Made by a program: the position numbers and the translations under genes. From the IMG/VR virus record IMGVR_UViG_3300034073_003542, positions 1 through 64,000 of that record: DNA of 64,000 nucleotides. One strand, written 5' to 3'. Shown here piece by piece: positions 4,651 through 39,979 of this stretch. Numbering within the stretch: the first letter of the stretch is position 1; every line of letters begins with the position of its first letter. The notes under the pieces are model-generated. The model searched no databases and was not told where the DNA came from. It saw only the letters and a list, made by a program, of their open reading frames with translations.

Positions 4651-5103
4651 ATGGCTCTTAAAACAGATCGTATCGTATTAGACACTGACGTATCATTCTT
4701 CATGAACACAGACGAAGAACGTGGTGGTGTTGCTTGCGTTGTAACAGCTGGTAGTGGTGTTAGCATGGACGATGCCAATGCTGTTGTTGAATATGCTGCT
4801 GCTGTTTCTGGTTCAAAACCAATTGGAATTTTAATGAATGACGTTGTTGATATTGACGTAACTCGTCAACATATCAACTTCCAGAAAGACGAAGTTCTAG
4901 TTGGTAACAAGGTTTGCTTACTTCGTAAGGGCCAAGTTACTACCAATATGATCGTTTCTGGTGCTACTCCTTCTGCTGGCGATGACGCTTATGTTGGCGT
5001 TAGCGGTTTGATTGGTACAAGCGCAACTAATGCCGTTAAGATCGGACAATGGTTGAGCAGCAAAGATTCCGATGGTTATGCAAAAATTGCCGTAAATCTA
5101 TAA
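4651..5103 (+). CDS. Capsid decoration/stabilising protein
   Basis: 150-aa beta-rich Gly/Ala/Val protein directly before the major capsid gene; strong GGGAGA RBS. Confidence 0.65.
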   Translation: MALKTDRIVLDTDVSFFMNTDEERGGVACVVTAGSGVSMDDANAVVEYAAAVSGSKPIGILMNDVVDIDVTRQHINFQKDEVLVGNKVCLLRKGQVTTNMIVSGATPSAGDDAYVGVSGLIGTSATNAVKIGQWLSSKDSDGYAKIAVNL

Positions 5104-5134: not shown

Positions 5135-6142
5135 ATGTCACGTATCGAAAAATTTCAACCAACTCCAGAGTTAACAGACCTTCTTAAAAAGAGCGGCAGT
5201 GCTAACCAGCAAGAATCCTTGGCTGCTAGTGCAGAAATCGCCAAGGCTATCACTGTTCCTCTACGTAAGGGTGTTATCAGTGGTGAAAATACTGGCGGCA
5301 TCTTTACTCCCGTTAAGTTAGAACCAGGCGCAAGTCCAGAGTTTCCTCTTGACTTCCTATCTCCTGGCTCAGAACGTGATCACGTTGCTTACACAATTCC
5401 TAATCATGGCTACATTCCACAACGTAGTGTTGAAGGCGACTACGTTATGGTTCCAACCTACGACGTAGGTTCAAGTATCGACATGAACTTGAAGTACGCT
5501 CGTGACGCTCGTTGGGACGTTGTTGGTCGCGCAATGGAAGTTCTTAACGGAAGCTTCGTTAAGAAGATGAATGATGATGCATGGCACGTTCTTCTAGCTG
5601 CTGGTGTTGGTCGTAACATCGTTGTATACGATAGTGACGCTGCTGCTAATCAGTTTACAAAGCGTCTTATCAGTTTGATGAAGACTGTTATGCGCCGTAA
5701 TGGTGGCGGAAATAGCACAAGCCAGAATCGTGGCACTTTGACCGACCTATATCTAAGTCCAGAAGCTATCGAAGATATGCGTAACTGGAATGTTGATCAG
5801 GTTGATGAAGTTACTCGTCGTGAGATCTATACCGCTGCTGATGGAACGTTGAATCGCGTGTTTGGCGTTAACCTTCACGACCTCGACGAACTCGGGGTTG
5901 GTATGGAATATCAGTTGTTCTATGAAGACGTTCTTAGCGGAACTCTTCCTGGTGGCGACAGCGAAATCGTTGTTGGTCTTGATCTATCGAAGGATGATGC
6001 CTTCATGATGCCTGTTCGTGAAGAAGTTAGCATCTTCGAAGATCCAACCCTTCATCGTCAACGTCGTATGGGATGGTATGGATTCGGAGAATGGGGTTTC
6101 GGCGTTCTCGACAATCGCCGTGTCATTCTTGGTTCTCTATAA
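5135..6142 (+). CDS. Major capsid protein (HK97-like fold)
   Basis: 335 aa, strong RBS, canonical position, followed by an intrinsic terminator; C-terminal GWYGFGEWGFGVLDNRRV pattern. Confidence 0.85.
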   Translation: MSRIEKFQPTPELTDLLKKSGSANQQESLAASAEIAKAITVPLRKGVISGENTGGIFTPVKLEPGASPEFPLDFLSPGSERDHVAYTIPNHGYIPQRSVEGDYVMVPTYDVGSSIDMNLKYARDARWDVVGRAMEVLNGSFVKKMNDDAWHVLLAAGVGRNIVVYDSDAAANQFTKRLISLMKTVMRRNGGGNSTSQNRGTLTDLYLSPEAIEDMRNWNVDQVDEVTRREIYTAADGTLNRVFGVNLHDLDELGVGMEYQLFYEDVLSGTLPGGDSEIVVGLDLSKDDAFMMPVREEVSIFEDPTLHRQRRMGWYGFGEWGFGVLDNRRVILGSL

Positions 6143-6173: not shown

Positions 6174-6201
6174 AAGGCTGCTTTCGCAGCCTTTTTTCTT
6201 T
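6174..6201 (+). terminator. Rho-independent terminator after major capsid gene
   Basis: AAGGCTGC-TTTC-GCAGCCTT stem-loop followed by TTTTCTTT. Confidence 0.85.
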
Positions 6202-6263: not shown

Positions 6264-6794
6264 ATGTACTGGGAACCAGAACTACTAATTATGATCAGGG
6301 TTTTAATTAACGATCTAGAAAGTCCATCTACATATTCTGATGCAAGAATAACTCAATTAGCTGTTGTTTCAGCAAAATATGTGCTACAAGATGCTACTTT
6401 AGCAACTAGTTATACTATTGACGTTGTTAATGAGACAATTACTCCAGATCCAGCAGACCCAAATACTAGAGACGAAGTTTTCTTAGGTTTAATAGGAATG
6501 AAAAGTGCTTGTTTATTAGATCACAGTACTTATCGTACTAAAGCGGCCCTGGAAGGCATTAGCACGCGATTGGGGCCAGCAGCATTAACAATTGGAGGGA
6601 ATCTATCTGGATATAAAACCTTGCTTGAAACAGGTCCGTGTGCCTTATATGATCAACTTATACTTGATAATAATATGGGTAATGTGTTGACTGTTCGAGC
6701 CGTATTAAGTCCATTTGTTGGAAATAATTTTGATCCAATAAATATACTTGGAAATCGTGGATCTTTTGGGTTAGGTGATCCTAATAGATATTAA
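6264..6794 (+). CDS. Head-tail adaptor/connector protein
   Basis: 176 aa, helical N-terminus (IRVLINDL...YSDARITQL), first gene after the capsid gene. Confidence 0.6.
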   Translation: MYWEPELLIMIRVLINDLESPSTYSDARITQLAVVSAKYVLQDATLATSYTIDVVNETITPDPADPNTRDEVFLGLIGMKSACLLDHSTYRTKAALEGISTRLGPAALTIGGNLSGYKTLLETGPCALYDQLILDNNMGNVLTVRAVLSPFVGNNFDPINILGNRGSFGLGDPNRY

Positions 6795-6811: not shown

Positions 6812-9376
6812 ATGTCATCGATAAATTTTTCTGCCCTCCAAAATTTATACAATACACAAATAGATATGTTGTTAGCGAGTACCGGTTTAACAACTAGATG
6901 TCAACTAAATTATGGTATTACTAAGTTAGATATTTGCCCAAACTGTATTTATGACGCTAATCTAAAAAAATCTTCTGGTAAATATAAAACCGGAGGCCCA
7001 ATACCTTTTATATTAGGTAGAATATGTCCATATTGTAATGGTAATGGATATTATGGCGAAGAAAAATCTGAATCTGTTTATTTAGCAATTATTTGGGATT
7101 ATAAAAGTTGGATAAATCCACCACCAGATATTAAAAATCCAGATGGATATATTCAAACAATTTGTGATAAAACCCTCCTTTCTAAAATTAAAAAAGCAAA
7201 AGATATAACTATAGTATATCACGAAAACAATACTAATCCAGTTTTTCAGTTATATGGAGAGCCAAATCCAGTTGGTTTAGGAGACAATAAATATCTCTTT
7301 TGTATATGGCAAAAAACTGGCAATATGAAGATGGTTGCTAATATTGAGGACGAAGGAGAAGATCCTAATCCCAGCAGTAGCAGCACAAGCGGAAGCAGCA
7401 GTAGCAGCACAAGCGGAAGCAGCAGTAGCAGCACAAGCGGAAGCAGCAGTAGCAGCACAAGCGGAAGCAGCAGTAGCAGCACAAGCGGAAGCAGCAGTAG
7501 CAGCACAAGCAGTAGCAGCACAAGCAGTAGTTCAAGTAGCACAATCATAACAGAAGCAGAATATGCCAACTTTATGAATGTAGCCTCTTGGAACGGATTA
7601 GATGGAAATGTTACAACAGTTGGAACTAACGGAATTTCTAGTTACTACGGAACATACGATCAATCCGGAAATCTTTTTGAAAGAATGGAAAATTCATTTG
7701 TTAGAGGGGGAGCGTTTAACACAACAACCACACTAGGAATATCTAAAGCATATAGAACAAATTGGAGCAGAGGAAACGCTAATCTAGCTGTTGGCTTTAG
7801 AGTAGCCACACAAACAAATCCTAATTCTTTTGATAACTTTGTTGCTGTCGGAAATCCAGGAAATAGTAACGATACCTCTGGTTGGGGACAAGTAAATTAT
7901 TCATATGAGATTAATCAATTTTTAGCTACTAATGAAGAATACACAGAATTTTTAAATAGTATCGCCGAAACAGATACCAATGGCGCATATAATATCAACA
8001 TGGCTATATCCCCAGCGGGAGGTATAGTTAGATCAGGCTCTAGCGGATCTTATACATATGCAACAAAAAGTTGTATGGCAGATAAGCCGGTAAATTTCGT
8101 TACATGGTACAACGCAGCAAGATACTGTAATTGGTTACACAACAATAAACCAACAGGTGACCAGACAGGTTTTACTACAGAAAATGGAGCGTATACATTA
8201 ACTGGAAATACTGGATCGCCAACCAGAAATCCATCTGCTAAATACTATCTACCTAACGAAAATGAATGGTATAAGGCCGCATACTATAATAGCGCTTTAG
8301 CTTATTACTTTACCTATGCTACACAAAGTGACGTAGCTCCTTTATCTGTATGTGCAACTTGTTGTGGAGATGCTACTTTGGATTGTGATCAAGATTGTGG
8401 TAGTGATAGTGGTAGCGGAAGTGGTAGTGAAGAAAGTGGTAGTGAGAGCGGCAGCGAAGAAAGTGGCAGTGGTAGCGAAGAAAGTGGTAGTGGTAGTGGT
8501 AGCGAAGGAAGTGAAAGTGGTAGTGGTAGTGGTAGCGAAGGAAGTGAAAGTGGTAGTGGTAGTGAAGAAAGTGGTAGCGGATGTTTAGATTGTATATCAG
8601 AATATATTACAATATCTTGGTGTGAAGTAGGTAGTGGTAGCGAAGAAAGCGGAAGTGAAGGCAGTGAAGAAAGCGGTAGTGAAGAATCAGGTAGTGAAAG
8701 CGGAAGTGAAGAATCAGGTAGCGGAATTGGGAGTGAAGATAATAGTGGCGGCAATGACGGAAGCGGTAGCGGAAGCGGTAGCGGTAGTGGTGAAATACCC
8801 CCAATACCATTACCTCCATCAGAGCCAGATCAACATTTTAGATGGCCGCCATATAGATTTAGCCCAGAAGATGGGTCGTTTGAAGAAGTTCGTGGATTAT
8901 TCGATGAAAATCTAGCTATTGGAGACCCAGATGGATTATGGACATTAGCTTATATTGAAAAACTTTATGAGGATACTATGCTAGAAGGTCAAACACAAAT
9001 ATCTGCAATTTGGGTTAAACGCGTAAGTCCAAGATTATGGCCCACAGCTAATTTATTTGCTGGAGAATATCATATTGTAGGTAGTCCTATTGGTATAGAG
9101 GCTGATTTTGCTAGCTGGACTACAAGAGCGTTTTCAGGAGCAACATTCTCTATGCAAATAGAACCAAAATTTATATCAAATGAATTACCCAATATAGAAG
9201 CGATTGGTGGTTATTTTATAGATATAATGAAATGGATTGGTGATAACAAAGACACCATTGACAATTCTTATAGAAACATGGGAGCGGGTGTAACTACATT
9301 CGGCAGTGACTTCTATACTGTTAGTGGAAGCTATACTACAGAACAACTAGATGATCTCACAGAGGGATTAATATAA
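6812..9376 (+). CDS. Multidomain virion protein: head-closure-like N-domain (two CxxC), Ser linker, circularly permuted FGE-sulfatase/C-type-lectin-fold domain, SGSEE linker, unknown C-domain
   Basis: CPNC and CPYC in the first 80 aa. FGE-family motifs YGTYDQSGN, RGGAF, GFRVA, VGNPGN, PVNFVTWYNAARYCNWL and LPNENEWYKAAYY. Confidence 0.6.
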   Translation: MSSINFSALQNLYNTQIDMLLASTGLTTRCQLNYGITKLDICPNCIYDANLKKSSGKYKTGGPIPFILGRICPYCNGNGYYGEEKSESVYLAIIWDYKSWINPPPDIKNPDGYIQTICDKTLLSKIKKAKDITIVYHENNTNPVFQLYGEPNPVGLGDNKYLFCIWQKTGNMKMVANIEDEGEDPNPSSSSTSGSSSSSTSGSSSSSTSGSSSSSTSGSSSSSTSGSSSSSTSSSSTSSSSSSTIITEAEYANFMNVASWNGLDGNVTTVGTNGISSYYGTYDQSGNLFERMENSFVRGGAFNTTTTLGISKAYRTNWSRGNANLAVGFRVATQTNPNSFDNFVAVGNPGNSNDTSGWGQVNYSYEINQFLATNEEYTEFLNSIAETDTNGAYNINMAISPAGGIVRSGSSGSYTYATKSCMADKPVNFVTWYNAARYCNWLHNNKPTGDQTGFTTENGAYTLTGNTGSPTRNPSAKYYLPNENEWYKAAYYNSALAYYFTYATQSDVAPLSVCATCCGDATLDCDQDCGSDSGSGSGSEESGSESGSEESGSGSEESGSGSGSEGSESGSGSGSEGSESGSGSEESGSGCLDCISEYITISWCEVGSGSEESGSEGSEESGSEESGSESGSEESGSGIGSEDNSGGNDGSGSGSGSGSGEIPPIPLPPSEPDQHFRWPPYRFSPEDGSFEEVRGLFDENLAIGDPDGLWTLAYIEKLYEDTMLEGQTQISAIWVKRVSPRLWPTANLFAGEYHIVGSPIGIEADFASWTTRAFSGATFSMQIEPKFISNELPNIEAIGGYFIDIMKWIGDNKDTIDNSYRNMGAGVTTFGSDFYTVSGSYTTEQLDDLTEGLI
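7373..7540 (+). repeat. Coding tandem repeat, 24-bp unit AGCAGTAGCAGCACAAGCGGAAGC (Ser/Thr/Gly linker)
   Basis: Five perfect copies plus degenerate partial copies; no spacers. Confidence 0.95.
8398..8790 (+). repeat. Coding low-complexity (SG)n/SEE repeats
   Basis: Two blocks of GGTAGT/AGCGAAGAA-type repeats encoding SGSEESGS, separated by a short Cys-containing segment. Confidence 0.9.
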
Positions 9377-11088
9377 TGCCATTTACAACATATACTAATG
9401 AACAAATGATAGTTATAGCTTGTAATTATGCACAAGCAGTATATAAAAACACTGCATCAGAAACAAGCGATGCTGGAATTCTAGACGTATGTTATCTTTG
9501 TGCAAAAAACACTAATGATCCAGTTTATACAGACCCAATAGATGCTGAACCACTACTATCTTTACCTTCTCCAGATCCATTTACTTTAGCTCAAATTTTA
9601 AGTATCTTAGCAGATATTTTCTTTTCTTGGGATGGTTGTGAGCCACGCGCAGATATTTTGGAAGGTATTTTTCCTGGTGGTATAGGTAGACCAGCTAGTG
9701 AATTATGTCCTGTTTTCCCAGAAGCAACAGGAACAGCAGATCAAATTTCTCTTAAACAAAATATTGGATATTATCATCATTTATTATGGGCTAGAACATA
9801 TTATTTTGATTTATGTAAAATGTCCCAATTATATATTTCATATAAAAAATATTTAGATTCCGATTTAATGGATTTAACTGCATTGATTGAAGATTATGTA
9901 ATGGATGATGGAACAAATATAGTCAATGGTGTAAACCCAACTAATTTATTAAACGAATGGAAAAATACTACTGCTCCTGAAGGTAAAATAACTTTTAGCC
10001 AATGGCTTTATACTCCACAAGAAAGAGATTGTACGGCTTTAACTTTAGATGATGTTCTAATTTGTATGAAGGGCGTTGCGGATTGCAATAATTTTACAGA
10101 AGATGATTCTTGGTGGAAATTAAATGAGTATGGATCAGCAGTACCTATATCTGCTAATTTAGGAATAGACACTAATTATATAGGAATAAACGAAACTAGA
10201 CATATAACATATAATGACGCAGCTACGGCGGTATTAAGAGTGTCATGGGAAGACCTATGGACTCCATTTGCTGGTGGATCAGATTTGGTTACATTTTCTC
10301 AATATGTTAGTGGATTAACTGTACACGGCCCAACAGTTGTATCTAGTCCAGGAGGATCACAAATATGTTTGGCAGTCGGAGCTTGTTGTACAATTGATGA
10401 TTGCACGGAAAACACTCTTGCTTGTCATTGTAGTGGTGTTGCTAATAGTTGGTGGAAAGAAGCGGAGCCTTGTGGTAATTGCATAATTCCATATTCTATT
10501 AATGCAGTATCTGATATTTATTTAAGTGGAACAGATCTAGAACAAGAACGAATTAGTATAGACGTATTAGAAGAAGTTGGATCATACACAACAACACTAG
10601 CTCTATTAGCCTCATGTAGCGGGGCTGCGCCAGACTTATTGACTGACGCTTCTGGTGTAACGAACGTTAACGACAATATCGCCGCCCTGCCTTTCTTGTG
10701 TAATGACACAATATCTATTGTAACAGACGTAACTTTAGACCAAGATAATCTTAGAGTTGAAAAAACAACCGTTAAAGTATTAGCTATTAAGGCACCTATT
10801 AGTGATTCCAATATAGATTCTTTTGTTGCTTGTGCAGGAACAAACATTGCAAACAATATTACTCCAGTAGATTTAACTACTACTATTTGTGGTGGAGATG
10901 TTTATACAGATCCCAATGTTACAGACGTTGTTGTTGTTACAGACGTTTATATAGAAAGCGAAATACTAAAACAAAGAAAGGCCACTATTACAGTGTTAGC
11001 TCACAGCCCTCCACCTGTAACAAATTCAATTATTTCAACCGATGATTGTGCCAGTTCAAGCTCTTCTTCGAGTTCAAGTTCTTCATAA
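9376..11088 (+). CDS. Acidic Cys-rich putative virion (neck/fibre) protein with GACC module, three beta repeats and poly-Ser tail
   Basis: TAATG coupling. GACC...C...C module; repeats INAVSDIYL/ISIVTDVTL/VVVVTDVYI each followed by I/V-x-VL; ends in CA plus poly-Ser. Confidence 0.5.
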   Translation: MPFTTYTNEQMIVIACNYAQAVYKNTASETSDAGILDVCYLCAKNTNDPVYTDPIDAEPLLSLPSPDPFTLAQILSILADIFFSWDGCEPRADILEGIFPGGIGRPASELCPVFPEATGTADQISLKQNIGYYHHLLWARTYYFDLCKMSQLYISYKKYLDSDLMDLTALIEDYVMDDGTNIVNGVNPTNLLNEWKNTTAPEGKITFSQWLYTPQERDCTALTLDDVLICMKGVADCNNFTEDDSWWKLNEYGSAVPISANLGIDTNYIGINETRHITYNDAATAVLRVSWEDLWTPFAGGSDLVTFSQYVSGLTVHGPTVVSSPGGSQICLAVGACCTIDDCTENTLACHCSGVANSWWKEAEPCGNCIIPYSINAVSDIYLSGTDLEQERISIDVLEEVGSYTTTLALLASCSGAAPDLLTDASGVTNVNDNIAALPFLCNDTISIVTDVTLDQDNLRVEKTTVKVLAIKAPISDSNIDSFVACAGTNIANNITPVDLTTTICGGDVYTDPNVTDVVVVTDVYIESEILKQRKATITVLAHSPPPVTNSIISTDDCASSSSSSSSSSS

Positions 11089-11098
11089 GGAATAAGTT

Positions 11099-12556
11099 AT
11101 GACACAGTTTTATGTTTGCTCCATATACGATGTTTTTAATGAAGAGACTGGATATTTTACGCAACAAGCAGAGTGTAGACTTTGGGATGAAGAAATAGAC
11201 GGAATTTATGATGGACCAAAGTATGATACTTTAGAGCAATGCAAAGCTAATACAATTTGTAATCAATTAGCTGCACAAAATATCCTTCCAGTAGTTTTAA
11301 ACGAAGAAAGCAATAATTATTGCAATATCAATTTTGAATCTGTAGAGCTTTTAAGTATTGATGGATCTAGTATAGAATTAGGACTAATTTTATCAGATGA
11401 GTATTATGACACATACTTAGAATATGTATTATTAGATAGTGAAGATAATTTGTTAACACCAGAACCAATACGTATAACAGACACCCCAAATCCATTGCCA
11501 GCATTATTTAATAGAACAATACCGTTAATTGATGGAGCATGTCAAATAAAAATACGATTAGTTAAACCTTGTGATATAGGATCTGGTGAATCATCTGGTT
11601 CTGGTAGCGAAGAAACTGGGTCTGATAGTGGAGACAGTGGCAGCGGAGGAATATTATCTGAACAACTATTTGATGAATCTTCATGGGCAGGATTGGTTGG
11701 ATCAATACCAATAGAAGAATATTTGAATGAAGCCGCTGCTAGCTGGAACAGCATGGTAAGATATAGTGATGTAGTATTTAATGCCTATAAAGAAGCAAAT
11801 CCTACATGGAATGGTTTAGCTCTAACAAATTATACTGAAATTTATGATCCAGACGGATGGATTGCTGCTTGTGGTCCGTTGTTGGGGGTTAATATTATAG
11901 ATAATGATCCCAACAATATTAAACAGAATGCTACAACATTTCAACTATTTATTAATACATATTTTGATGGTCCGCCTTGGAATTTTACTGCTAGCGATTG
12001 GATAAATACTATAGCTCATGAACTTGGTCATGCTTTAGGTATAGGCATTTATTGGGATGTAAATCCAGACTACTGGCTTGATGGAACAAAGTATCAAAAT
12101 TCAAGTCTCGCTTATAATGAAATTATTGGTGATTTATCTAATACTAGAGGATTATTACCAGTTGAAGATAGCGGCGGTATTGGTACAGAGTCTGCTCACT
12201 GGGAAGATAATGGTCGATTAATAGCTTATCCAAATTCGGATGGATATAATTATCCTGGTTGTGATTTTGATATTATGGTTGGATTTTATGAAGTTGGTAA
12301 TCCATTGCCTATATCAAATTTATCTAAGCAGTTGTTAATAGATATGGGATATGAAGATGTAGGTAATAACACTTTTCCTACACCACAACTTAAAATTAAG
12401 AGTTTGACAATTTCTAGTCCTGAATCACATAATATGAATATGTATATAGATAAAAGCAAAAAATGTGGAACGGCACATCAATGTGGGTGTGATACACATC
12501 ATATTGAAGGAACTATAGATCTTAAAAATAATACATTTATCAAAAAGGAAGAATAA
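11099..12556 (+). CDS. Zinc metallopeptidase (metzincin, leishmanolysin/M8-like) with N-terminal Cys-containing domain and Ser/Gly linker
   Basis: HELGHALG at 12017, downstream PVEDSGGIGTESAHWE (third His) and DIMVG Met-turn. Confidence 0.75.
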   Translation: MTQFYVCSIYDVFNEETGYFTQQAECRLWDEEIDGIYDGPKYDTLEQCKANTICNQLAAQNILPVVLNEESNNYCNINFESVELLSIDGSSIELGLILSDEYYDTYLEYVLLDSEDNLLTPEPIRITDTPNPLPALFNRTIPLIDGACQIKIRLVKPCDIGSGESSGSGSEETGSDSGDSGSGGILSEQLFDESSWAGLVGSIPIEEYLNEAAASWNSMVRYSDVVFNAYKEANPTWNGLALTNYTEIYDPDGWIAACGPLLGVNIIDNDPNNIKQNATTFQLFINTYFDGPPWNFTASDWINTIAHELGHALGIGIYWDVNPDYWLDGTKYQNSSLAYNEIIGDLSNTRGLLPVEDSGGIGTESAHWEDNGRLIAYPNSDGYNYPGCDFDIMVGFYEVGNPLPISNLSKQLLIDMGYEDVGNNTFPTPQLKIKSLTISSPESHNMNMYIDKSKKCGTAHQCGCDTHHIEGTIDLKNNTFIKKEE

Positions 12557-13869
12557 TGTCCACAAATCAATATTTTTTAGAACTAATGAAAAAAACAAAT
12601 ATGTGGATAGATAAATTATCTTTTCCTCCGTCTAATTATCCAGATAATTGGGCTGGATTAAAAGAGGTCCAGCTAGCACATATTTATATGATGGATACTC
12701 TACTAGAAAAAGAGTTTATAGCTCCAAAGTATAAATATGAAAGAGGAATTGTTGTTGGTGCGGGAGGAGCGAAGTATTTTGGGTGTGGTTTTGCTTGTTT
12801 TTATATCTTAAGAAAACTTGGATGTACTCTTCCAATAGAATTTTGGTATTTAGATGAGTATGAAATGGACAATAAAATGAAAGAATTGTGTGATGTTTAT
12901 GGAATCAGATATATAAATGCGACAAAATATTGTGAAGAAAACAACATAAAACCCAGAATACTTAATGGATGGGAATTAAAATCTTTTTCTACTTTACACT
13001 CTAATTTTAAAGAAGCTTTATATTTAGACGCAGATAATATACCTGTAAAAGATCCTACGTATCTATTTGATGATCAAAGATACAAAGAATTAGGAGCTAT
13101 TTTTTGGCCTGATTTACCTCCACACAAAAGAAAAGAGTGGCTACCAGAAATTTGTTGGAATAATGTTGGATTAGAATATAGGGATGAAGTGGATTTTGAA
13201 ACAGGGCAATACTTGATTAATAAAGAAAAATGCTATAAAGAACTTAGTCTAACAATGTGGATGAATGAACACTCTGATTGGTTCTATAAATTTGTTTATG
13301 GAGATAAATCTACTTTTCATTTAGCATGGAGAAAATGTGGATCTGATTATTGTATTCCATCAAAACCAGCGGGATGGAAACGTCCATGTATTCTTCAATA
13401 TGATCTAGATGGTAAACTAGCTTTTCAGCACGCTTGTCAAGGTAAAGAAGTTATGTTTAGTGGAGAAGGCCCAACTAATCAATTTAATCATAGTTTGATT
13501 AAAGAGGCTTATGAAAAAAGAACAAAATATTGGTCTGGTGTAATATATTCTTGGCAAGAAATGAATGAAGAAGAACAGAAATACGCCAAACAATATATTG
13601 GAACATTCAAATATACCAGAATAGGTTTAGATAATAGAAATATAGAGCTATTAGATAATGGAGAAATCGGCGAAGGCAAAGCTAAATGTGAAAGAAGATG
13701 GAGCGTGAGAGTAATAGATGGAATTCCGACAATTATAGTTATTGGAGCCGCACATAAAGATTCAGAAATAGCCATGTTTTTTGCCAAAGATAATGGTGAC
13801 GGAAAAACATTTACTGGTCAGTGGACAGCTTTTGAAAGATGTATGGTAACACTAGAAAGACTAGGGTGA
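12556..13869 (+). CDS. Alpha-mannosyltransferase-like glycosyltransferase (Mnn2/GT71-like)
   Basis: RGIV, LRKLGCTLPIE, LYLDADN (DxD), FWPD, ETGQ and YGDKSTF motifs of the Mannosyl_trans3 family. Confidence 0.75.
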   Translation: MSTNQYFLELMKKTNMWIDKLSFPPSNYPDNWAGLKEVQLAHIYMMDTLLEKEFIAPKYKYERGIVVGAGGAKYFGCGFACFYILRKLGCTLPIEFWYLDEYEMDNKMKELCDVYGIRYINATKYCEENNIKPRILNGWELKSFSTLHSNFKEALYLDADNIPVKDPTYLFDDQRYKELGAIFWPDLPPHKRKEWLPEICWNNVGLEYRDEVDFETGQYLINKEKCYKELSLTMWMNEHSDWFYKFVYGDKSTFHLAWRKCGSDYCIPSKPAGWKRPCILQYDLDGKLAFQHACQGKEVMFSGEGPTNQFNHSLIKEAYEKRTKYWSGVIYSWQEMNEEEQKYAKQYIGTFKYTRIGLDNRNIELLDNGEIGEGKAKCERRWSVRVIDGIPTIIVIGAAHKDSEIAMFFAKDNGDGKTFTGQWTAFERCMVTLERLG

Positions 13870-13872
13870 TAT

Positions 13873-14490
13873 ATGCCACATTTTAGACCAAATACATGGG
13901 ATGAAAATATTTGGAATGATATAGTAAACAAAAATGAATACGGTGTTCATGATCAATGGCCTCACAATCTAATAGATATTGGTGGACACATAGGTTCTTT
14001 TAGTTATAAAATGTTATCAAAACATAATACAAAAAAGGTTGTTATTGTTGAACCCAATACTGAAAACTACAATCTATTAAAAATTAATCTTGCAGAATTT
14101 ATAAGAGAAAATAAAGTAATAACCCTAAATAGGGGGATCGGTCGCCCAGAAACAAAACTAGATATGAGTGATGAAACACTAGGAACTAATACTGGTGGGT
14201 GTCCTTATTTTGAGTCAAAGTCTGGCAGAATAGATTCTATCTCTCTAGACTCGATTATTGATATGATCGACGACGGAGATTCGATATTACTAAAAATAGA
14301 CTGTGAAGGATGTGAGTACGAGGCTTTGTCTTCTTGTACAAAATTATCCAAAATTAATTGTATAGTAGGAGAATTTCATGATATAGATGAAGTTAGAAAT
14401 ATTGGACTTATAAGAGATATTTTAAAAGAATACAATTTTAGTTATCACTATAAATCGCATCATTTAGGTTTGTTTGGGGCGCACAAATAA
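13873..14490 (+). CDS. FkbM-family SAM methyltransferase
   Basis: IDIGGHIG SAM motif, VEP, LKIDCEGCE, GEFH. Confidence 0.85.
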   Translation: MPHFRPNTWDENIWNDIVNKNEYGVHDQWPHNLIDIGGHIGSFSYKMLSKHNTKKVVIVEPNTENYNLLKINLAEFIRENKVITLNRGIGRPETKLDMSDETLGTNTGGCPYFESKSGRIDSISLDSIIDMIDDGDSILLKIDCEGCEYEALSSCTKLSKINCIVGEFHDIDEVRNIGLIRDILKEYNFSYHYKSHHLGLFGAHK

Positions 14491-15125
14491 TGAAACTTTC
14501 ACTCAAAATATTAGAATCTAATGCGCAAATAAATAAACTGGTACTAGAAGCACTAGTTCCAGAAATAGCTAATTATATGAGCGCAAGCATAAAAAAACTA
14601 AGAACTAATATACCAAAAATTATTTCAGAAACTATAAAAAATAGTCCAGAATATGACTCAATAATGTCAGGTCAACTAAAATATGAATTAGGTATACCAG
14701 ATCCACAGACTAAATTAGCAGGAATAATAGAAATCTGGACTAATAATATTTATACAGAATATCATAAACCAACTATTTCAGCTGGAAAAATTAAAACATC
14801 ATTTAGTATGAGTTTGATAAGATCAGATTTTGCTGACGTATTATCATCAGATTTTAGTATAGTAGTAGACGCAGCCAGAGGATATAATCTACAGTGGTTA
14901 GAATGGTTACTTCTTGACGGAAATAAAGTTATTGTTCCAAAACACGAGGTTATATTTCGCAATAGTAGATTTTCTCGTACTGGCGCAGCATTAATGAAAG
15001 AATCAACACAATCATGGAGAGTTCCATCACAATTTAGTGGAACAATCACAGATAATTGGATTACTAGAGCAATAGATTCCGCCCAAACAAAAATATCAGA
15101 CACAATAGAAAAGGCATTTAACTAA
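14490..15125 (+). CDS. Putative tail completion/neck protein
   Basis: Precedes the tail terminator and tube genes; C-terminal NWITRAI resembles HK97 gp10-like ends. Confidence 0.45.
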   Translation: MKLSLKILESNAQINKLVLEALVPEIANYMSASIKKLRTNIPKIISETIKNSPEYDSIMSGQLKYELGIPDPQTKLAGIIEIWTNNIYTEYHKPTISAGKIKTSFSMSLIRSDFADVLSSDFSIVVDAARGYNLQWLEWLLLDGNKVIVPKHEVIFRNSRFSRTGAALMKESTQSWRVPSQFSGTITDNWITRAIDSAQTKISDTIEKAFN

Positions 15126-19651: not shown

Positions 19652-22600
19652 ATGGCTAGTAAATTCAATCTAACAGCAGAACTTAATCTACGTGGACCAG
19701 CAAATCTACGTACTGTTGTAGCTGATATACGCCGTCAATTAAGTGGCGTAAAGGTTGATGTTGGCGTTAATGTTGCAAAAAATGCTGGTCGTAATATTGA
19801 CAATATAACAAATCGTCTAAATCAACTTAATGCCTCATTAGTACAAGCTCGCACTAGTACCGATCAACTAAACGCTTCTTTTGGTCAATTAGCGGCTATT
19901 GCTAGATCAATAGATACGGTCAATGTTAAAGCGTCTCAATCGACTAAACAACATGCTGACTCGATAAATCAAACAGCAAAAGCTGCTGCTGTAGCTTCTA
20001 GTAGAGTAGAAGAGTTTGGTAAGCAAAGCGCCCTTGCTATTAAGAGATTTGCGGCTTTTAGTTTACCTACTGTAACATTTTTTGCTTTAGGAAGAGCTGT
20101 TCAGTCTGGTATCGAGTCATTTATTGATTTTGATAAACAGATGGTAAAGTTGGAGCAGATCACTGGAAACACAAGAACTCAGCTAAAAAGTTTGAGCGGT
20201 GAAATAACTCGTCTTTCTACAACTATGGGTGTTAGTAGTTCAGAATTAGCTAAAGTCGCCGAAACCCTAGCTCAAGCTGGTTTGAGCGCAAAAGATACTA
20301 CTACTGCTCTTCAAGCTCTAGCTAAAACAGATTTAGCTCCATCATTTGATAATTTGACCCAAACAACAGAAGGCGCTATTGCTGCTATGCGTCAGTTTGG
20401 TTTAGAAGCCAAAGATTTAGAGCGAGCACTAGGATCTATTAATGCTGTTTCTGCTGCGTTTGCTGTTGAATCAGGAGACATTATCGCTGCTATTCAGCGT
20501 ACCGGTGGTGTATTTGCAAGCACAAGTAAGGGCGTAAGTGAAGGCACCGATGCTCTTAATGAGTTTGTTGCTGTGTTCACCAGCGTTCGTGCTACAACGC
20601 GTGAAAGCGCCGAGACAATTGCGACTGGTTTACGTACTATTTTTACGCGTATTCAAAGAGCTGGAACAATCAATCAATTAAAAGACTACGGCATTCAATT
20701 ACAAGACTTAGAAGGTAAATTCGTTGGACCTTATGAAGCAGTAAAGAGATTAAGCGAAGGACTCAAATCTCTCGATCCAAGAGATATTCGTTTCTCTAGC
20801 ATTATCGAAGAGCTTGGTGGATTTCGTCAAATTGGTAAAGTGTTGCCATTAATTCAACAATTTGCTACTGCTCAAGAAGCTCTTAAAGTAGCTCAAAGAG
20901 GACAAGGAAGTTTAACAGACGCCCAAATCAAGGCTCAACAAAGTCTTTCAAACCAATTTTCTAAAGTTCGCGAAAATTTCTTGGCTCTTATGAGAGATAT
21001 TGGTAATAGCACAGCTTTTCAAGGTTTAGCGAAAATTGTTTTGGTTCTATCAAATAGTTTAATTGGTTTAGTTGGGGCCTTTAAACCAGTACTACCTATT
21101 TTGGCTGTTATTGGAGCTATTAAGGGAATTAGCGCTATTGGCAGTTTTTCAAAAGGATTTTTTGGAAGTAAAAAACAAGCAAAGCCATCATTATTTGCTG
21201 GTGCAGCTGGCGAAGACCCAAAAGAAAAAGCTACGCGAGAAAGAAACGAAGCTACTGCTAGAGCAGCAGAAGCTTTAAGGATTAATACAGACGCCCTTAA
21301 TAAATTAACTGGCGCAATTACGGCCCTTGATGCTACTATTCAAAGTAGACCCACCTCAACTTTTAGTAAGGGTGGCAAGGTTCTTGGATTTAACACTGGT
21401 GGTATTGTTCCTGGTAATGGTGGTGGCGATAGAGTTCCAGCTCTTTTAGAGGGTGGTGAAGTAGTCATCAACAGAAGGGCTGCTCAAAGACATGGTAAGC
21501 ATAACATAAATAAATTAAATAGATATGCTTATGGAGGCTTAGTAGACGCCAATATTGTTAATAGTAATGATCAATATATTGGATTAAAAAAAAATGATGG
21601 GACAGCAAAAGAGGATACATTTGATATTAAAACTAAAAGACAATATATTACATTAAAAAATGTTGATAGATATGCTGGAAAAGCAATAGCAGATGGTGAA
21701 GTTGTTAACTTTGATGCTCAAGGATACAAACAAAGAGCCAAAACACCAGGATGGAAACAATTTGAACAAATAATTGAACAATTAGGATATAAAGACTTAA
21801 ACAAATCCACAAAGAGAAACAATTACCCCATTGACTTTACTAAAGGTGGTGAATGGTACGATGCAAAAAACGTATCCTCACCAGTTCCAGATAGGGAATT
21901 AGCAAGAAAGGCTTTACATCATATCTTAACGGAAACATATAAGAACTATGATTATCTCACACCACACAAAAAAATAAAAACTAGAGACGAAAACAGTCTA
22001 CTAAAATATACAAATAAACCTATTACTGTAGGTGGAGATGAGATTGAAGCCACTAGAACTATTACTCAACTTATTCCTAGATATGAAGTAGATAATAATC
22101 AAAAAAATATAGATAAAATACAGGGTGCTATAACTGGTACAAGTAAACAAAAAGGAACACTAAGTCGTAATGCCAATAAGGCTTTACAGCAAGATCTACA
22201 AGACTTACAAACAGATAATACAGTAGGAACATTAGGGGCGCGCAAAATATTATCAGCTAGTAATAGACTTAGTAGTAATTTTACATTAGGTGGATTAGTT
22301 CAAAGCTTTGCGGAAGGTGGTCGTATTGGATATATTGATTCAGACGTTATTAAAGAACAACTCGCTGGACCAAAAGAAAAATCTATAGTCGACGCTATGG
22401 CTAGTTTGGGATTAGGAAAAAATAAGAAAAAAGTAAATACTTATGTTGCAAAACTTATTGATTTAGCTAAATCTTCTCGTGGAGCAGAAGAAGCTTCTGT
22501 TAAGAAGTTGAGTGTGCTTTTTGGTTCTGCTGGTAGTGGCAAGTCTTCTATCCTAACAGGAGCAGCGGGTATTCCAGGAAGATCCCCTTTTACTGGAAGT

Positions 22601-25600
22601 AAACCAATTTTAACGCCTAAAGATATAGATGACGTAGAAGAAGTTGTAATAGCTACAAGTACAGTAACTCCAGATAAAATCAAGAGATTTATTTCTGATG
22701 CAGATGAAGTGTACGCTATTAGTGCTACGACACAAGCAGAACAAGAAAGAATTAAACAAAATAGAAAATCCAGAGATGAAACGGGATTAGGATCTTATGG
22801 GCGTAAAGCTGGGGCCACAAAAACCGCAAAAATTGATACTGTATTTGAAGAAGCTTTATTACTAGAACTACAACAACAAAATCAAGCGCGAGGCAAATCA
22901 CAAAAACTATCTATTTTTGGAAGAAGCGATAGCGATGAATTTAGAGAAAAAACTGGAACAGAACTACCTAGTTTTAGAAGAGAAAAAATTAGCATTGCGA
23001 GAGGTAGCTTTGGACCATTTACCGCTGGTCACGAATATCTACAACAATTTGCCCAAGAAGAATACGGAATCCCACCACAAGCTTTTGCTTATTTGGTTGC
23101 TCCAGACGAAGGAATAGATATTGGGCGAGAAATAACTAATCACGATATTAGAACAGCTATCTTAGATCAATCTATTCGTGAAGCTGTAGTTCAATTAACT
23201 TCTAGAAAAGGCAAGAGCTATAATGTTGGAGCTACTGGTCGTGGAGATAGAAGTATACCACAAGGAATAGAAATAACCAAATCTGGAGCAGCGCAAAGAT
23301 CGGTTCTATTACCTGGTGCCGGTAGCATCAATATTGTTTCTAAGGCTGATGCATCGGCTAAAAAATTAGCTAAACTAGAAAAAGCTTCCCAAGAAGCCGG
23401 ATATAAACTGGTGGATATTCCTCGATTTGAAGGTATTTCTGGATCGCAAGTTAGAGAAGCTATCGAAACTGGAGATCTAACCACTCTACAATATGCTCTT
23501 AATCCCACTTCATATGCTATAATGAAGAAAAATTTACAAAATATTCAAAATAGAATTAGGGCCGTTCCAGAATTAATTACCAAAAATAGAGCAACATTAA
23601 CATCAGAATTAGATCCAATAGACGAGAAGATTCGTGAACTAGGACCAGATCCAGCCAACTTCAAAGAAGTAAATGAGCTTAAAAACCAAAGATATGATAT
23701 CATATCATCATACTCATACTCTTTACATAAATCGTTACAAGAATTAGCTTCACAAGATCCAGTTAATTTTGCTATTGACACAAATATTTCCGACGAAGAA
23801 CTATCCTCTGCTCGACTAGATATAGCCAATAGAGCGCCCTTAAAACAAAGATCAATTGAAGAAGCGGTTTTAGCAACACAACCTAGAGTTTTAGCTGAAT
23901 CTGTTCCAGCTTTCGCAAACAAGAAGAAAAAAACTAGTACTGGTAGAGGTAGACAATATAATATAGAAAGAGAACCTACTTTAAATGAACTTCAAGATTC
24001 TTCTGGACCTTTTTCAGAACTAGCTCAGTTAACAGTTAAAGATCCACAAGAAGTTCAGGCTAAAATTAAAGACTGGCAAGAATTTGTAAAAAAAACTATT
24101 AGAGATGCTGGATTAGATGAATATGGTGGCTTTAAAGCTTTAGATGGAAATTCTGGTCCAGCAACTATTGCTAGTATTTTTGACCAAAAAGCAGGTAAAG
24201 CAAAACCAATAACAAAAAAAGTACCAATATTAGATCCAAACGGTAATCCTACCGGTAAATATCGAGATACAGGAGAAATAATTGGATATCAAAAATCTAA
24301 ATCAAAAAAGGGTCGCACAAAAGAAGATCAAGCAGTTATAGACGCTGTTATTAAAACAGCAAGAGAAGCTAGAGAAAAACTTGTTGACAAATACAAAGAA
24401 GGAAAAAGAGAGTCTTATAGCTTTATAAAGCCAGTAGATGCTACTGAAACATTAGATTTCAAAAAACAAGGACTATTATTTGCGGGAGTTGGTATTAATG
24501 GAGAGCCATATAGCCCAAAAAGATTATCTTTAGGCTCTGGTTTAGATGTTTTAGTTGGAGGATATATATTAAACGATAAAGATACTCGTAAAGAAATTGA
24601 ACAATATTCTGAAAACACAATAAGAGCAGAAAAAACAGCCGCAGAGAAAGGACAAGCTGGTGTGGCTGCGTCTTATCTAAAACGTGGTAAAAAATTAGCA
24701 CTAGATTTTGATAAAACATTAGTTACTGGAGCGGATCTTCATGGCGACGATTTAGATGCGTTTGCTGATATAGATAAAGTAAAGGCTAGTTTAGAAAATC
24801 CTCAAACTAAATTAACAATATTAGGAGAGAAATTAAGAAGAGTATTGGCTAGTCAAAAAGCTCAAGCTACAAAAACTGATTTATTATCTAGAATGAGAGT
24901 TGTAACAGCAAGACCTCATCATACTGTTGGAATTTTAGGAAATTGGTTAGCTCAACAAGGTATACCTATAACAGATATTAAGGGTGTTGGAGGAAAAGGA
25001 TTATCTGATCAACAAGTTGCAGAAGCTAAAGCCGCTTTATTAGATTTAGAGTCATTATTTATTGATGATAATGAAACTAATGTGAGAGTTGCCAAAGAAC
25101 AAGGCTTTAATGCAATTAGATATGGTGCTGCTGAATTCGACGAATCTGGAGAAAGATTACATAGAGGACAAGACGTTATTGAAGGACTATTTCTTCAAAA
25201 TATAATCAAAAGATTTAGCGGTAGACAAGCTGTTGGCGGAATCAATAATACTAGTATGGATTTTCCAACAGGGCTTGGATTAGCAGCAGAATTATTTCCT
25301 GGTTTAGATCCAGATATTCCCACAGACGCAAAAAGAACCTTACGTGGAGCCTCCGACTTAAAGAGTAATATTACAAATTATCTTAAGAAAGAAGGAAGAT
25401 TTAATACAAAATCAGTAGGAGCAGCGCAAGGTCAATTAGAGCCAGTTGGATTTGCTGGCGGAGGTATTGTTCAGCGATTTTCAAAAGCTGGACAAGTAGA
25501 TTACGATCCCAAAACTAAAAGAGTAATGAATATTCTTGGGAAAATTAAAAGTCCAACTGGAACAATAGATCCTAGCAAATTAAGTGAAGCTGAATTAGGT

Positions 25601-38339: not shown

Positions 38340-39979
38340 TGGGAACAACAACAGAACTACAGAATGTTTTTGATTCGCCAGGAGCTTTGAAGTTTTTGGG
38401 CGCTTCTGTACTTTCTTTCAATAGCAATCTAGGAATTGGTTCTGGAAGCGAAAGTACTTTAACAGTTGAGTTAGTAGAAGACTGTGACGAAGGAGACATA
38501 TTTCAACCTAATATTGGAACTGTGGAGGTTGGATACCCAGTATATTTTGACACAACAACTGTTGGTGCAACTTTTATGTTTGGGGGTGTTTTAACAAACT
38601 GGACAAAAAATCGCTCATCAGGTGGAGATACATTCAGTGCAACAGTAACCGATCCAAGACAGTTATTACAAAATGTAAGTGTTGTTGTTGATAGTTATCT
38701 TGGTAGTCCAGTTAACGGAAATAATAACTATGTTAATGCTTATGCGTATTTTGAGGGCGATGTATTAAATGGTAATTGTGCTGTTTTTGGTGACTCATTT
38801 AGTAATGAAAGAGGAATGCCGTATGGTAAAGTTATAGAAGCATTAACAGCTATTAATCCAACAGTTTATGCTCCTACTGGTTATGGATATACAGTTAATT
38901 GGGCTTCTTTACCTGGAGGATTACCAGAATACTATAGGGTTGCTGGTCCACAAACTTTACTACAATTAATTCAAGATGTTTGTGATGCAACAGGTAATAT
39001 GTTTTATTGTTATCTTATGCCTGGAGATATTATCAACATAGGATTAATTGATCTAAAAGTCGCCCCGACATCTTTTTCTGCTATTATTGACGAATTTGAT
39101 GGATACGCTACTGAACTATCTTATGGACAAGAATTACGCAATGATGTTACTAAAGCAGTTATTTTTGGTGAATATCAACATTATTTAACATATATCAATG
39201 ACTTCAAATTTTATTTTGGTGAAGACCTGGATACTAACACCGGAGAATATTATCCAGTTGTTGGAGAAAATGGAACAAATAATCTTTTTTGGATTAATAA
39301 GAAAATCACTGATCTAAACAGTCAACTTATAGTTCCTTTTGCAAATGATGGGCCTTATGAGTTCTGTGAGCTAGAGCTTTTAGCTGCACAAGCTGGTAGA
39401 GAAATGTGGATGATGTATACTTTTTGTAATAATGCTGTTAACGGAGCTAATGAGTTTAGCGATTTAGTTAAAACTAGATATACTGATAATTCAGAAAACA
39501 TTAAGACTTTATTAAATAATCTTGTTGCTGCATATGATGCCACTCCAGATCCAGAGAAAAAAACATCGCTTGCTAAAAATTTTATTACTAGAATAAGGTC
39601 AGCTAGAGAAGCAAATGTATTACAACTAACTCAGGAAGATCAACATGATTTAGATACTATATATAATTTTGTATTAAATCTAGCAAATACATATTACGGA
39701 AAACAGTTTTTATGTCCCTTAAATGAAAAAATTTGTGGTTATTTTGGTGACGATTTTCAAGAAAAAATATTCTCTAGTGTTCCTACGAGTGCTGGTGGTT
39801 GGGTTGAGCAGAATGAGCCGTTGATAGGTTTAAGTGATCCAGATTTAGGTTTATTTAGATCAGACGATAATAGAGTTACGTCTTTTGCTTTATTTACTTT
39901 GGATGGAACAACTGAAGGAGATTCTGGCACTGATGATACTAGCGATGCTAGTCCTGGAGAAATGGGAGAGGGAGAATAA
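38339..39979 (+). CDS. Tail tip/baseplate hub-like protein
   Basis: TAATG coupling gives a start at 38339. Hub-like N-terminus (SFNSNLG...STLTVELVED...FGGVL...VTDPRQLL). Confidence 0.5.
   Translation: MGTTTELQNVFDSPGALKFLGASVLSFNSNLGIGSGSESTLTVELVEDCDEGDIFQPNIGTVEVGYPVYFDTTTVGATFMFGGVLTNWTKNRSSGGDTFSATVTDPRQLLQNVSVVVDSYLGSPVNGNNNYVNAYAYFEGDVLNGNCAVFGDSFSNERGMPYGKVIEALTAINPTVYAPTGYGYTVNWASLPGGLPEYYRVAGPQTLLQLIQDVCDATGNMFYCYLMPGDIINIGLIDLKVAPTSFSAIIDEFDGYATELSYGQELRNDVTKAVIFGEYQHYLTYINDFKFYFGEDLDTNTGEYYPVVGENGTNNLFWINKKITDLNSQLIVPFANDGPYEFCELELLAAQAGREMWMMYTFCNNAVNGANEFSDLVKTRYTDNSENIKTLLNNLVAAYDATPDPEKKTSLAKNFITRIRSAREANVLQLTQEDQHDLDTIYNFVLNLANTYYGKQFLCPLNEKICGYFGDDFQEKIFSSVPTSAGGWVEQNEPLIGLSDPDLGLFRSDDNRVTSFALFTLDGTTEGDSGTDDTSDASPGEMGEGE

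Follow-up and report, generated by a model that had tools for sequence, protein, structure and literature searches.

Serine-tract neck and tail proteins encoded beside putative glycosyltransferases in an uncultured 210-kb phage and in unrelated phages

Glycosylation of phage particles has so far been described for mycobacteriophages, in which phage-encoded glycosyltransferases are reportedly encoded with the structural genes and glycans are reported at the C-termini of virion proteins, the carriers being the capsid and tail-tube subunits (Freeman et al. 2023, as cited in PMC12619734). In Gram-positive bacteria, serine-rich repeat proteins (SRRPs) with SASASAST-type repeats are glycosylated in the cytoplasm by dedicated, co-encoded transferases (GtfA/GtfB, GlyE and others; PMC6973325). 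Fungal GT71 mannosyltransferases (Mnn1/Mnn2/MNT2; PDB 7xjv) are type-II Golgi membrane proteins, and the characterised enzymes elongate existing glycans rather than initiate on protein. GT60-type polypeptide alpha-GlcNAc-transferases of Trypanosoma cruzi and Dictyostelium initiate mucin-type glycans on Thr (PMC3769586). Collagen-like glycoproteins such as Bacillus BclA carry Gly-X-Y repeats.

We examined a 64,000-nt stretch (the window; positions 1 to 64,000 of IMG/VR record IMGVR_UViG_3300034073_003542) of a 209,847-bp phage genome. The original prediction, made from sequence alone, was that three proteins with Ser-rich tracts are followed in a tightly packed operon by a GT71-like mannosyltransferase and an FkbM methyltransferase, that the last tail gene has further poly-Ser runs and abuts a minus-strand transferase cluster, and that the tracts are mucin-like linkers on neck and tail appendages carrying a methylated, perhaps sulfated, glycan for shielding or adhesion. 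The observation was confirmed: translation placed all five Ser-rich tracts in frame where they had been noted (Table 1), and a scan of the whole genome found such tracts in these four ORFs only. The interpretation is supported in its central inference, that the tracts are substrates of the co-encoded transferases, although the modification itself is only inferred. The tracts had been placed between genes labelled head-tail adaptor and tail completion; these labels remain those of the prediction, as only the N-domain of S1 could be placed, weakly, among neck/head-closure proteins. The structural character of the tail protein is supported by synteny.

Table 1. Features of the neck island, the last tail gene and the convergent transferase cluster (window positions)
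Position	Strand	Size	Feature	Supporting observation
5135-6142			Major capsid gene	No Ser tract
6174-6193	+		Terminator-like hairpin after the capsid gene; likely start of the transcription unit holding the neck island	8-bp stem, 5 GC, T-run
6812-9376	+	854 aa	S1
6812-7336	+	aa 1-175	S1 neck (head-closure/stopper-like) N-domain, weak assignment	Stand-alone gene of about 170 aa in relatives; best fold hits T4 gp14 and other phage neck proteins (E about 4e-3, TM about 0.4)
7373-7540	+		S1 (SSSSSTSG)n tract	Tandem DNA repeat, 24-nt period at 7372-7527
7886-8323	+	aa 359-504	S1 FGE-sulfatase/C-type-lectin-like domain	PF03781, E 3.2e-11
8398-8790	+		S1 SGSE-type tract
8804-9373	+		S1 C-terminal domain
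9376-11088	+	570 aa	S2, Cys-rich	No family match
11053-11085	+	11 Ser	S2 C-terminal poly-Ser, after Cys-Ala
11099-12556	+	485 aa	S3; N-domain, linker, protease-like domain
11579-11650 (about)	+		S3 SGS linker after a Cys
11651-12418	+	aa 185-440	S3 leishmanolysin-like (Peptidase_M8) metalloprotease domain	Atlas structural TM 0.70-0.74 to Peptidase_M8 clusters; feature score 0.94-0.95
12017-12031	+		HELGH of the S3 protease-like domain
12556-13869	+	437 aa	GT71-like retaining-type GT-A glycosyltransferase	PF11051 Mannosyl_trans3, E 6.7e-34, 117.9 bits (cut-off 22)
13027-13035	+		DxD motif (D158-A159-D160)	Invariant in 18 homologues
13873-14490	+	205 aa	FkbM-family SAM methyltransferase	PF05050, E 1.9e-13, 51.4 bits (cut-off 22.7)
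15447	+		Next terminator-like site comparable to 6174-6193
39979-42636	+	885 aa	Last gene of the tail block
41863-42305	+		Three poly-Ser runs of the tail protein	Two directly after Cys
42639-43415	-	258 aa	ORF, first gene of the convergent cluster	No family match
43412-44446	-		GT4-type glycosyltransferase	GT1/GT4 domain (Glycos_transf_1)
44439-45086	-		Second FkbM-family methyltransferase	PF05050, E 1.6e-10, 41.8 bits
45089-46486	-		GT-A-type glycosyltransferase-like protein	PLOD GT domain; weak DUF6492
46483-47154	-	223 aa	ORF within the cluster	No family match
47156-47716	-	186 aa	Sulfotransferase	Sulfotransfer_2, E 2.5e-7, 31.6 bits (cut-off 22)

The genes from 6812 to 15125 overlap or lie at most 10 nt apart and are bracketed by the two terminator-like sites, so co-transcription is plausible but not shown (among public sequencing runs only DNA runs were found to hold the region, and promoter-like sites were at the chance level). 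The tracts are very unlikely to be artefacts of assembly or of low-complexity DNA. Public short-read contigs do break at the repeats (7372-7570, 8500-8565) and one minor variant skips 8504-8762, so exact tract lengths are uncertain. However, all tracts are in frame inside long ORFs with conserved domains on both sides, they recur at homologous positions in independent metagenomes and relatives, and several runs hold the sequence.

A sequence search of S3 against PDB found nothing, and the protease assignment rests on Atlas structure and feature matches; homologous domains lie in the same island of three relatives (loci L002, L003 and L005). For the lectin-like domain of S1 we considered an origin as a diversity-generating (DGR) variable protein, but rejected it because BLASTN of 7501-8500 against the whole genome found no template repeat, only the internal Ser-tract repeats. 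Homologues of the tail protein in GT71-bearing relatives also carry a Cys-then-Ser tract, whereas those in complete relatives without GT71 are 1782-2144 aa long and have no tracts.

The best stretch of the PF11051 match covers profile positions 2-143 of 273 (two stretches in all). The AlphaFold model (pLDDT 94) is a confident GT-A fold, and its best PDB match is MNT2 (7xjv, E 1e-11), although identity is about 12% and TM only about 0.44; the profile searched against PDB gave 2.1e-5. Glycogenin and GlyE of the pneumococcal SRRP pathway are also among its nearest folds, which thus include protein- or glycoprotein-modifying enzymes. In contrast to the type-II topology of the fungal enzymes, no membrane-spanning segment was found (maximum 19-aa Kyte-Doolittle mean 1.27), and the protein is a member of a soluble bacterial/phage subfamily with an extra C-terminal beta-rich domain that is conserved in the phage subfamily. 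The FkbM domain is adjacent to the GT71-like domain or, in many homologues, fused to it in one polypeptide.

To ask whether tract and enzyme belong together, we collected 69 viral loci with a GT71-like gene (GC 27-71%, mostly unrelated 30-60 kb phages). In 50 of 64 a Ser/Gly tract lies within 2 kb upstream on the same strand, against 0 of 48 within 2 kb downstream. This holds in 16 of 23 enzyme clusters at 70% identity and in 7 of 12 at 50%; the loci are phylogenetically related, so the raw counts and Fisher values overstate independence. The tract proteins form at least 14 BLASTP-unrelated groups, so the link is to the tract and not to one protein family. In 14 of the 64 loci no tract was detectable, and 46 of 61 bacterial loci with homologues have none. 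As negative controls, 80 capsid-related loci without the enzyme (1.15 Mb) contain only 2 long Ser tracts, and two complete relatives, G002 and G004, lack these transferases and have no comparable tracts, only one or two short Ser-rich windows of 12-20 aa (G004 also lacks GT60, GT2 and FkbM).

The original prediction would have been contradicted by relatives that keep the Ser tracts without any glycosyltransferase, and no relative examined keeps Ser tracts without a transferase beside them. Non-homologous enzymes appear instead of GT71: in the relative G001 the Ser-tract gene is followed by a GT25-sulfotransferase fusion and a methyltransferase, and in small-phage relatives it is followed by GT4 plus GT2. 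The GT4 that directly follows Ser-tract fibre genes in small high-GC phages is homologous end to end to that of the window (25% identity over 325 aa, E 9e-23, to locus L268). This GT4 family is less tightly tied to tracts, as 46 of 80 of its loci show none within 6 kb. The type of linker also tracks the enzyme family: GT60-type (PF11397) loci have Thr-Pro tracts in 50 of 80 and Ser tracts in 2 of 80, whereas GT71-like loci have them in 5 of 69 and 52 of 69, respectively. The S1 homologue with a (TP)n linker sits next to a PF11397 enzyme, which parallels the eukaryotic use of this family on Thr-rich mucins. The GT60-type enzyme is absent from the window's genome, and the PLOD-GT-like protein is not related to it.

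An alternative is that the tracts are unmodified flexible linkers and the transferases act on host envelope polysaccharide (superinfection exclusion or lysogenic conversion), phage DNA or a small molecule, lying beside fibre genes only because the end of the structural module is a common site for accessory genes. In one temperate locus (L092) the GT71-like/FkbM pair indeed lies about 2 kb from an integrase, a typical place for conversion genes; the many bacterial homologues without a tract nearby point the same way. DNA and host-serotype modification are listed as the usual roles of phage glycosyltransferases (PMC12619734). Every jumbo relative, including the tract-free G004, carries core GT1-family genes, so a transferase does not by itself imply tract glycosylation. 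We consider this alternative unlikely, because it does not explain the near restriction of tracts to genomes or loci with these accessory transferases, their position upstream and never downstream, the replacement of one transferase family by another beside Ser tracts, or the pairing of Ser tracts with GT71-like and Thr-Pro tracts with GT60-type enzymes.

Because characterised GT71 enzymes elongate, either the phage enzyme has a new acceptor or an unseen initiating enzyme is needed. The appendage proteins might therefore be glycosylated in another way: the GT71-like enzyme may only extend a glycan started by a host or other phage enzyme (the window has further transferases that could initiate), or its true acceptor may be the Cys-rich domain or the Cys at the tract boundary, the Ser tract being only a spacer. 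A Cys lies within 4 residues of the tract start in 38 of 92 distinct tracts, against 13% expected, and several of the tract-less viral loci still have a Cys-rich protein (7-9% Cys) directly upstream of the enzyme. On the other hand, in most small phages the GT71-like/FkbM pair is the only transferase set near the tract gene, and the window's tracts follow very different domains, which argues against one folded acceptor domain. This possibility also appears doubtful.

The explanation that we favor, with moderate confidence, is a phage-encoded system for O-glycosylating virion appendages. Late in infection, the structural operon would make a neck protein extended by Ser-rich linkers carrying a lectin-like domain (S1), a Cys-rich protein with a poly-Ser tail (S2) and a protein that presents a leishmanolysin-like protease on an SGS linker (S3). 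The soluble transferase, working in the host cytoplasm with a host nucleotide sugar (GDP-mannose by analogy with GT71), would put hexose on the serines of these disordered tracts, and the methyltransferase would then O-methylate the sugar. The poly-Ser runs of the tail protein would be modified by this pair or by the abutting convergent cluster. The product would be stiff, hydrophilic, protease-resistant mucin-like stalks that hold the binding and enzymatic domains away from the neck and tail. The domain identities, the gene order and the comparative co-occurrence are what the analysis establishes; in the absence of biochemical data of any kind, the attachment of sugar, its identity as mannose and GDP-mannose-dependent transfer, its sulfation (inferred only from the presence of a sulfotransferase), the assignment of enzymes to tracts, and a role in shielding or adhesion remain inferences.

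Compared with mycobacteriophages, the carriers here are neck and tail appendages with long internal low-complexity tracts rather than the capsid and tail-tube subunits, only S2 has a C-terminal Ser tail, the enzyme set differs (GT71-like plus FkbM, with a sulfotransferase), and the hosts would be uncultured aquatic or subsurface bacteria. With the SRRP systems the locus shares long Ser-rich repeats encoded beside putative transferases; GT8-clan GT-A enzymes are also present, as is a GT4-type enzyme, a possible rather than an established counterpart of the initiating GtfA/GtfB-type GT4 pair. However, the repeat units differ (poly-S, SSSSSTSG, SGSEE), the lead enzyme is GT71-like with a methyltransferase partner, and the product would be assembled into a virion without an accessory Sec system or cell-wall anchor; SecA2/SecY2 export and anchoring domains, which are not expected for a virion protein, were not seen in the ORFs scanned. 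A collagen reading was rejected for the window's tracts, which have an 8-residue period or are homopolymeric and lack a Gly-X-Y period. It applies only to one family of relatives, the Planctomycetota-type small phages, in which the tract is (G-S-S)n, preceded by Cys-Cys, next to sugar-modifying enzymes (locus L125, Pfam Collagen E 6e-12).

If this reading is right, virion glycosylation is widespread among uncultured phages, including jumbo phages and relatives with the same gene order in Planctomycetota genomes, its gene sets are modular and exchangeable, and the low-complexity tract can be read as the substrate, which would give a rule for spotting glycosylated virion proteins from sequence. 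It would also point to a possible new acceptor activity for a GT71-like enzyme, namely direct transfer to serine in the bacterial cytoplasm, and it bears on how phages stiffen, protect or disguise their receptor-binding and enzymatic appendages. Cultured Planctomycetota with complete genomes (CP197422, CP197409 and CP197414) carry related loci with the same three-gene order, namely the (G-S-S)n gene, the GT71-like gene and the FkbM gene, so the idea is directly testable. A more far-reaching possibility, which we regard as tentative, is that many aquatic and soil phages carry a modular system in which linker and enzyme travel together: cytoplasmic, phage-encoded initiating protein O-glycosyltransferases from families otherwise known from eukaryotes would each be matched to a linker chemistry (GT71-like for Ser/Gly, GT60-like for Thr/Pro) and, with methyl- and sulfotransferases, would build bottle-brush stalks on virion appendages. 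In the Planctomycetota-type phages, glycosylated (G-S-S)n tracts nucleated by a Cys-Cys knot would then form sugar-stabilised collagen-like fibres.

Literature searches on GT71 or PF11051 in phages, on polyserine with phage glycosyltransferases and on Planctomycetes prophage fibres found nothing relevant, and the description of the 'moraphage' lineage notes core glycosyltransferases but no link to tracts (PMC12619734). Searches against PHROGs gave nothing useful for the island, the tail genes or a representative small phage. No tRNAs are in the window. GenBank phages gave no DNA match and no match to the GT71-like protein, and the nearest cultured relative of the capsid protein is Bacillus phage G at 19.5% identity.

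The window is the first 64 kb of a single 209,847-bp contig with 35% GC that belongs to an uncultured large phage. Its + strand carries a structural module, in which the cement-type minor capsid gene and the capsid gene were recognized by weak PHROG and Pfam hits, and the tail block ends at 42636. GenBank phages gave no DNA match, and the nearest cultured capsid is that of Bacillus phage G at 19.5% identity, whereas IMG/VR contains more than 599 capsid relatives at about 75% identity. The public sequencing runs in which the sequence was found are subsurface and soil metagenomes, all of them DNA. A single very long ORF sits in the tail module, and relatives have ORFs of 5389 aa (complete genome G001) and 6454 aa (complete genome G002) at the same place; no tape-measure gene was identified.

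Coordinates of the features discussed in the text (phage genome unless another sequence is named)
Feature	Coordinates	Strand	Remark
Cement-type minor capsid gene	4651-5103	+
Capsid gene	5135-6142	+
Gene on one side of the S1 N-terminal backbone gene in relatives	6264-6794		position of the homologue
S1	6812-9376		Ser-tract ORF
S1 repeat, end of short-read contigs	7372-7570
S1 FGE-sulfatase/C-type-lectin-like domain	7565-8380		aa 252-523
S1 repeat, end of short-read contigs	8500-8565
Stretch skipped in a minor contig	8504-8762
S2	9376-11088		Ser-tract ORF
Short Cys-rich motif in S2	about 10390-10450		begins G-A-C-C
S3	11099-12556		Ser-tract ORF
S3 leishmanolysin-like (Peptidase_M8) domain	11651-12418		aa 185-440
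Gene on the other side of the S1 N-terminal backbone gene in relatives	14490-15125		position of the homologue
Very long ORF of the tail module	19652-34960	+	5102 aa
Tail protein	39979-42636		Ser-tract ORF
Short Cys-rich motif in the tail protein	about 42130-42240		begins G-A-C-C; between two poly-Ser runs
ORF with a sub-threshold Glycos_transf_1 signal	54760-57627	-	955 aa; signal at 55312-55434
Long diverged repeats outside the window	about 88.6-90.3 kb, 99.7-101.8 kb and 102.0-103.1 kb		array at 102.25-103.05 kb
Further GT1- and GT2-family genes outside the window	112361-112789, 118624-119118, 126784-127733
GT25-sulfotransferase fusion and following methyltransferase in G001	G001:28056-30603 (L168:8056-10603)		directly after a Ser-tract gene

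The original prediction had placed Ser-rich tracts in three proteins directly upstream of a GT71-like enzyme and a methyltransferase, and in a last tail gene abutting a minus-strand transferase cluster, and this observation holds: translation puts every tract at its predicted position. A scan of the whole genome found such tracts in only four ORFs (S1, S2, S3 and the tail protein), and their serines are encoded mainly by AGC/AGT in tandemly repeated DNA. Pfam confirmed the GT71-like enzyme (PF11051, E 6.7e-34) and, directly downstream of it, the FkbM methyltransferase. On the minus strand, starting 3 nt after the stop of the tail gene, Pfam identified a GT4-type enzyme, a second FkbM, a GT-A (PLOD-GT-like) protein and a Sulfotransfer_2 protein. 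The tract lengths should be regarded as approximate, because short-read contigs break inside the two long S1 repeats and a minor contig (depth 5 against 22) joins 8504 to 8762 with 20 other letters, which suggests tract-length variants in the population. The genes from 6812 to 15125 overlap or are at most 10 nt apart, and a strong terminator follows the capsid gene, with none of similar quality before 15447.

The first 175 residues of S1 form a conserved backbone gene, which in several relatives is a stand-alone protein of about 170 aa. Its structural model (pLDDT 74) matches phage neck and head-closure proteins best, namely T4 gp14, the P1, XM1, phiKZ and SPP1 connectors, and BFVD entries named "neck protein" or "head closure knob", although the scores are weak (E about 4e-3, TM about 0.4). 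Behind the first Ser tract lies an FGE-sulfatase/C-type-lectin-like domain, for which no DGR template repeat was found and whose homologous domains occur in relatives as part of other proteins in the island after the capsid gene (loci L038, L044 and L045 and contig G009); an SGSE tract and a C-terminal domain follow. S2 is Cys-rich, has no family match and ends in Cys-Ala-Ser11. It shares a short Cys-rich motif with the tail protein that may be a small disulfide- or metal-bound module. S3 carries a leishmanolysin-like metalloprotease domain with an HELGH motif behind an SGS linker (Atlas TM 0.70-0.74); this domain is duplicated in relatives, recalls flagellins that carry an inserted M8 protease, and may be a virion-displayed protease. 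We therefore read the island as a set of neck appendages that display binding and enzymatic domains on low-complexity stalks. The region after the capsid gene is a hot spot for such insertions in relatives: between the capsid gene and the homologue of 6264-6794 it is hypervariable, and relatives (loci L013, L014, L020, L034, L047 and L074) carry 5-9 kb of different large ORFs there, some with Thr-Pro or Gly-rich tracts.

Eighteen homologues of the GT71-like enzyme share an invariant L-D-A-D motif. Its structural model is confident (pLDDT 94), and the best solved match is yeast MNT2 (GT71), followed by UGGT, LARGE1, XXYLT1, glycogenin and the pneumococcal SRRP enzyme GlyE. The protein has no membrane anchor and carries a conserved C-terminal beta-rich domain. 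Among 408 database homologues, many at 45-48% identity are fused to an FkbM domain, and in unrelated phage contigs the two genes are adjacent; we therefore infer that the two activities work together.

Whether tracts and transferases co-occur across related genomes had been proposed beforehand as a check. A profile search retrieved 69 viral loci with a GT71-like gene, with GC from 27 to 71%. In 50 of the 64 loci with enough sequence, a Ser/Gly tract starts within 2 kb upstream on the same strand, whereas none of 48 has one within 2 kb downstream. The pattern holds in 16 of 23 enzyme clusters at 70% identity and in 7 of 12 at 50%. The remaining 14 of the 64 loci lack a tract, and several of these have only a Cys-rich protein upstream. 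The tract proteins fall into at least 14 BLASTP-unrelated groups, and their repeat units vary (poly-S, (SG)n, (GSS)n, (SGPSS)n and (GSAS)n). A Cys sits at the tract boundary in 38 of 92 tracts, against 13% expected, and the same is seen in the window. In a group of small-phage fibre-like proteins (loci L113, L125, L130, L132 and L133, and the bacterial loci L295, L297, L299 and L303 of Pirellulaceae), three N-terminal repeats each end in Cys, a Cys-Cys pair comes next, directly followed by (G-S-S)n that matches Pfam Collagen, and a Cys-rich C-domain follows, which looks like a cystine knot plus a collagen-like helix made almost entirely of Ser and Gly.

The 80 capsid relatives without the enzyme (1.15 Mb) contain only two long Ser tracts. 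One lies in G001, in which the Ser-tract gene is directly followed by a single protein that fuses a GT25 glycosyltransferase domain to a Sulfotransfer_3 domain, and then by a Methyltransf_24 protein, a strong hint of a sulfated glycan in a relative. The other (locus L085) runs off the end of its contig, so that its neighbours do not enter the comparison. The complete relatives G002 and G004 lack every window transferase and have no comparable tracts, only one or two short Ser-rich windows of 12-20 aa, and G004 also lacks GT60, GT2 and FkbM. In the small-phage lineage, five of the six relatives without GT71 keep a Ser tract; there the next genes are GT4 and GT2 enzymes, and that GT4 is homologous to the window's (E 9e-23). 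The sixth (L273) has neither a tract nor a GT71-like gene. The GT4 family as a whole is less closely tied to tracts, as 46 of 80 loci, mostly low-GC large phages, show none within 6 kb; by contrast, 23 of the 32 most distant loci, 22 of them high-GC small phages, have the tract gene ending at the GT4 start or within about 2 kb upstream. GT71-bearing jumbo relatives also have a Cys-then-Ser tract in the tail-gene homologue and a GT4 homologue in the convergent cluster.

Linker chemistry tracks the enzyme family. The S1 homologue on contig G009 has a long (TP)n linker in place of Ser and is followed by a GT32-like/FkbM protein and a PF11397 enzyme (E 3.4e-75). PF11397 is the family of polypeptide alpha-GlcNAc-transferases. 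In Trypanosoma cruzi such transferases start mucin-type glycans on Thr (PMC3769586). G002 has many TP tracts, a PF11397 gene and no long Ser tracts. Across the locus sets Fisher values are extreme, but they treat related loci as independent and so overstate the case.

Thr-Pro and Ser tracts by locus set
Locus set	Loci	With Thr-Pro tract	With Ser tract
PF11397 (GT60-type)	80	50	2
GT71-like	69	5	52
Capsid control	80	11	3

The interpretation in the original prediction, that Ser tracts on neck and tail appendages are glycosylated by the co-encoded enzymes, is supported by these comparisons, and we hold the mechanism with moderate confidence. Domain matches, gene order and co-occurrence come directly from the analysis, whereas it is inferred that sugar is attached to the tracts at all, and the enzymes of the window cannot be separated as to which of them would serve which tract. 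Known GT71 enzymes elongate glycans and do not initiate on protein. In bacterial genomes, homologues occur mainly in Planctomycetota, Verrucomicrobiota and Acidobacteriota; only 15 of 61 such loci have a tract, and tract presence correlates with FkbM. The inferred system would work like mycobacteriophage virion glycosylation, as reported in papers citing that work, and like the cytoplasmic glycosylation of serine-rich repeat adhesins (PMC6973325), but it shows neither set of defining features in full: the predicted carriers are appendages and not capsid or tube subunits, no accessory Sec system was seen among the ORFs scanned, and the lead enzyme is a soluble GT71-like protein paired with a methyltransferase. 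Literature searches found no description of a phage Ser-tract/GT71-like module. Methylated O-glycans are documented on a planctomycete S-layer protein (PMC5088730). Complete genomes of cultured Planctomycetota carry the same three-gene arrangement, which opens the idea to direct testing.

Further GT1- and GT2-family genes lie elsewhere in the phage genome, outside the window. The GT1 genes are conserved in all complete relatives, including the tract-free G004, and all jumbo relatives have such core GT1 genes whether or not they have tracts, so they probably serve another purpose. Within the window, the N- and C-terminal parts of the minus-strand ORF with a sub-threshold Glycos_transf_1 signal are conserved in relatives, where the homologous ORFs are only 539-551 aa long. 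Outside the window, the genome also contains long diverged tandem or dispersed DNA repeats of 66-83% identity, including an array with a period of about 90 nt.
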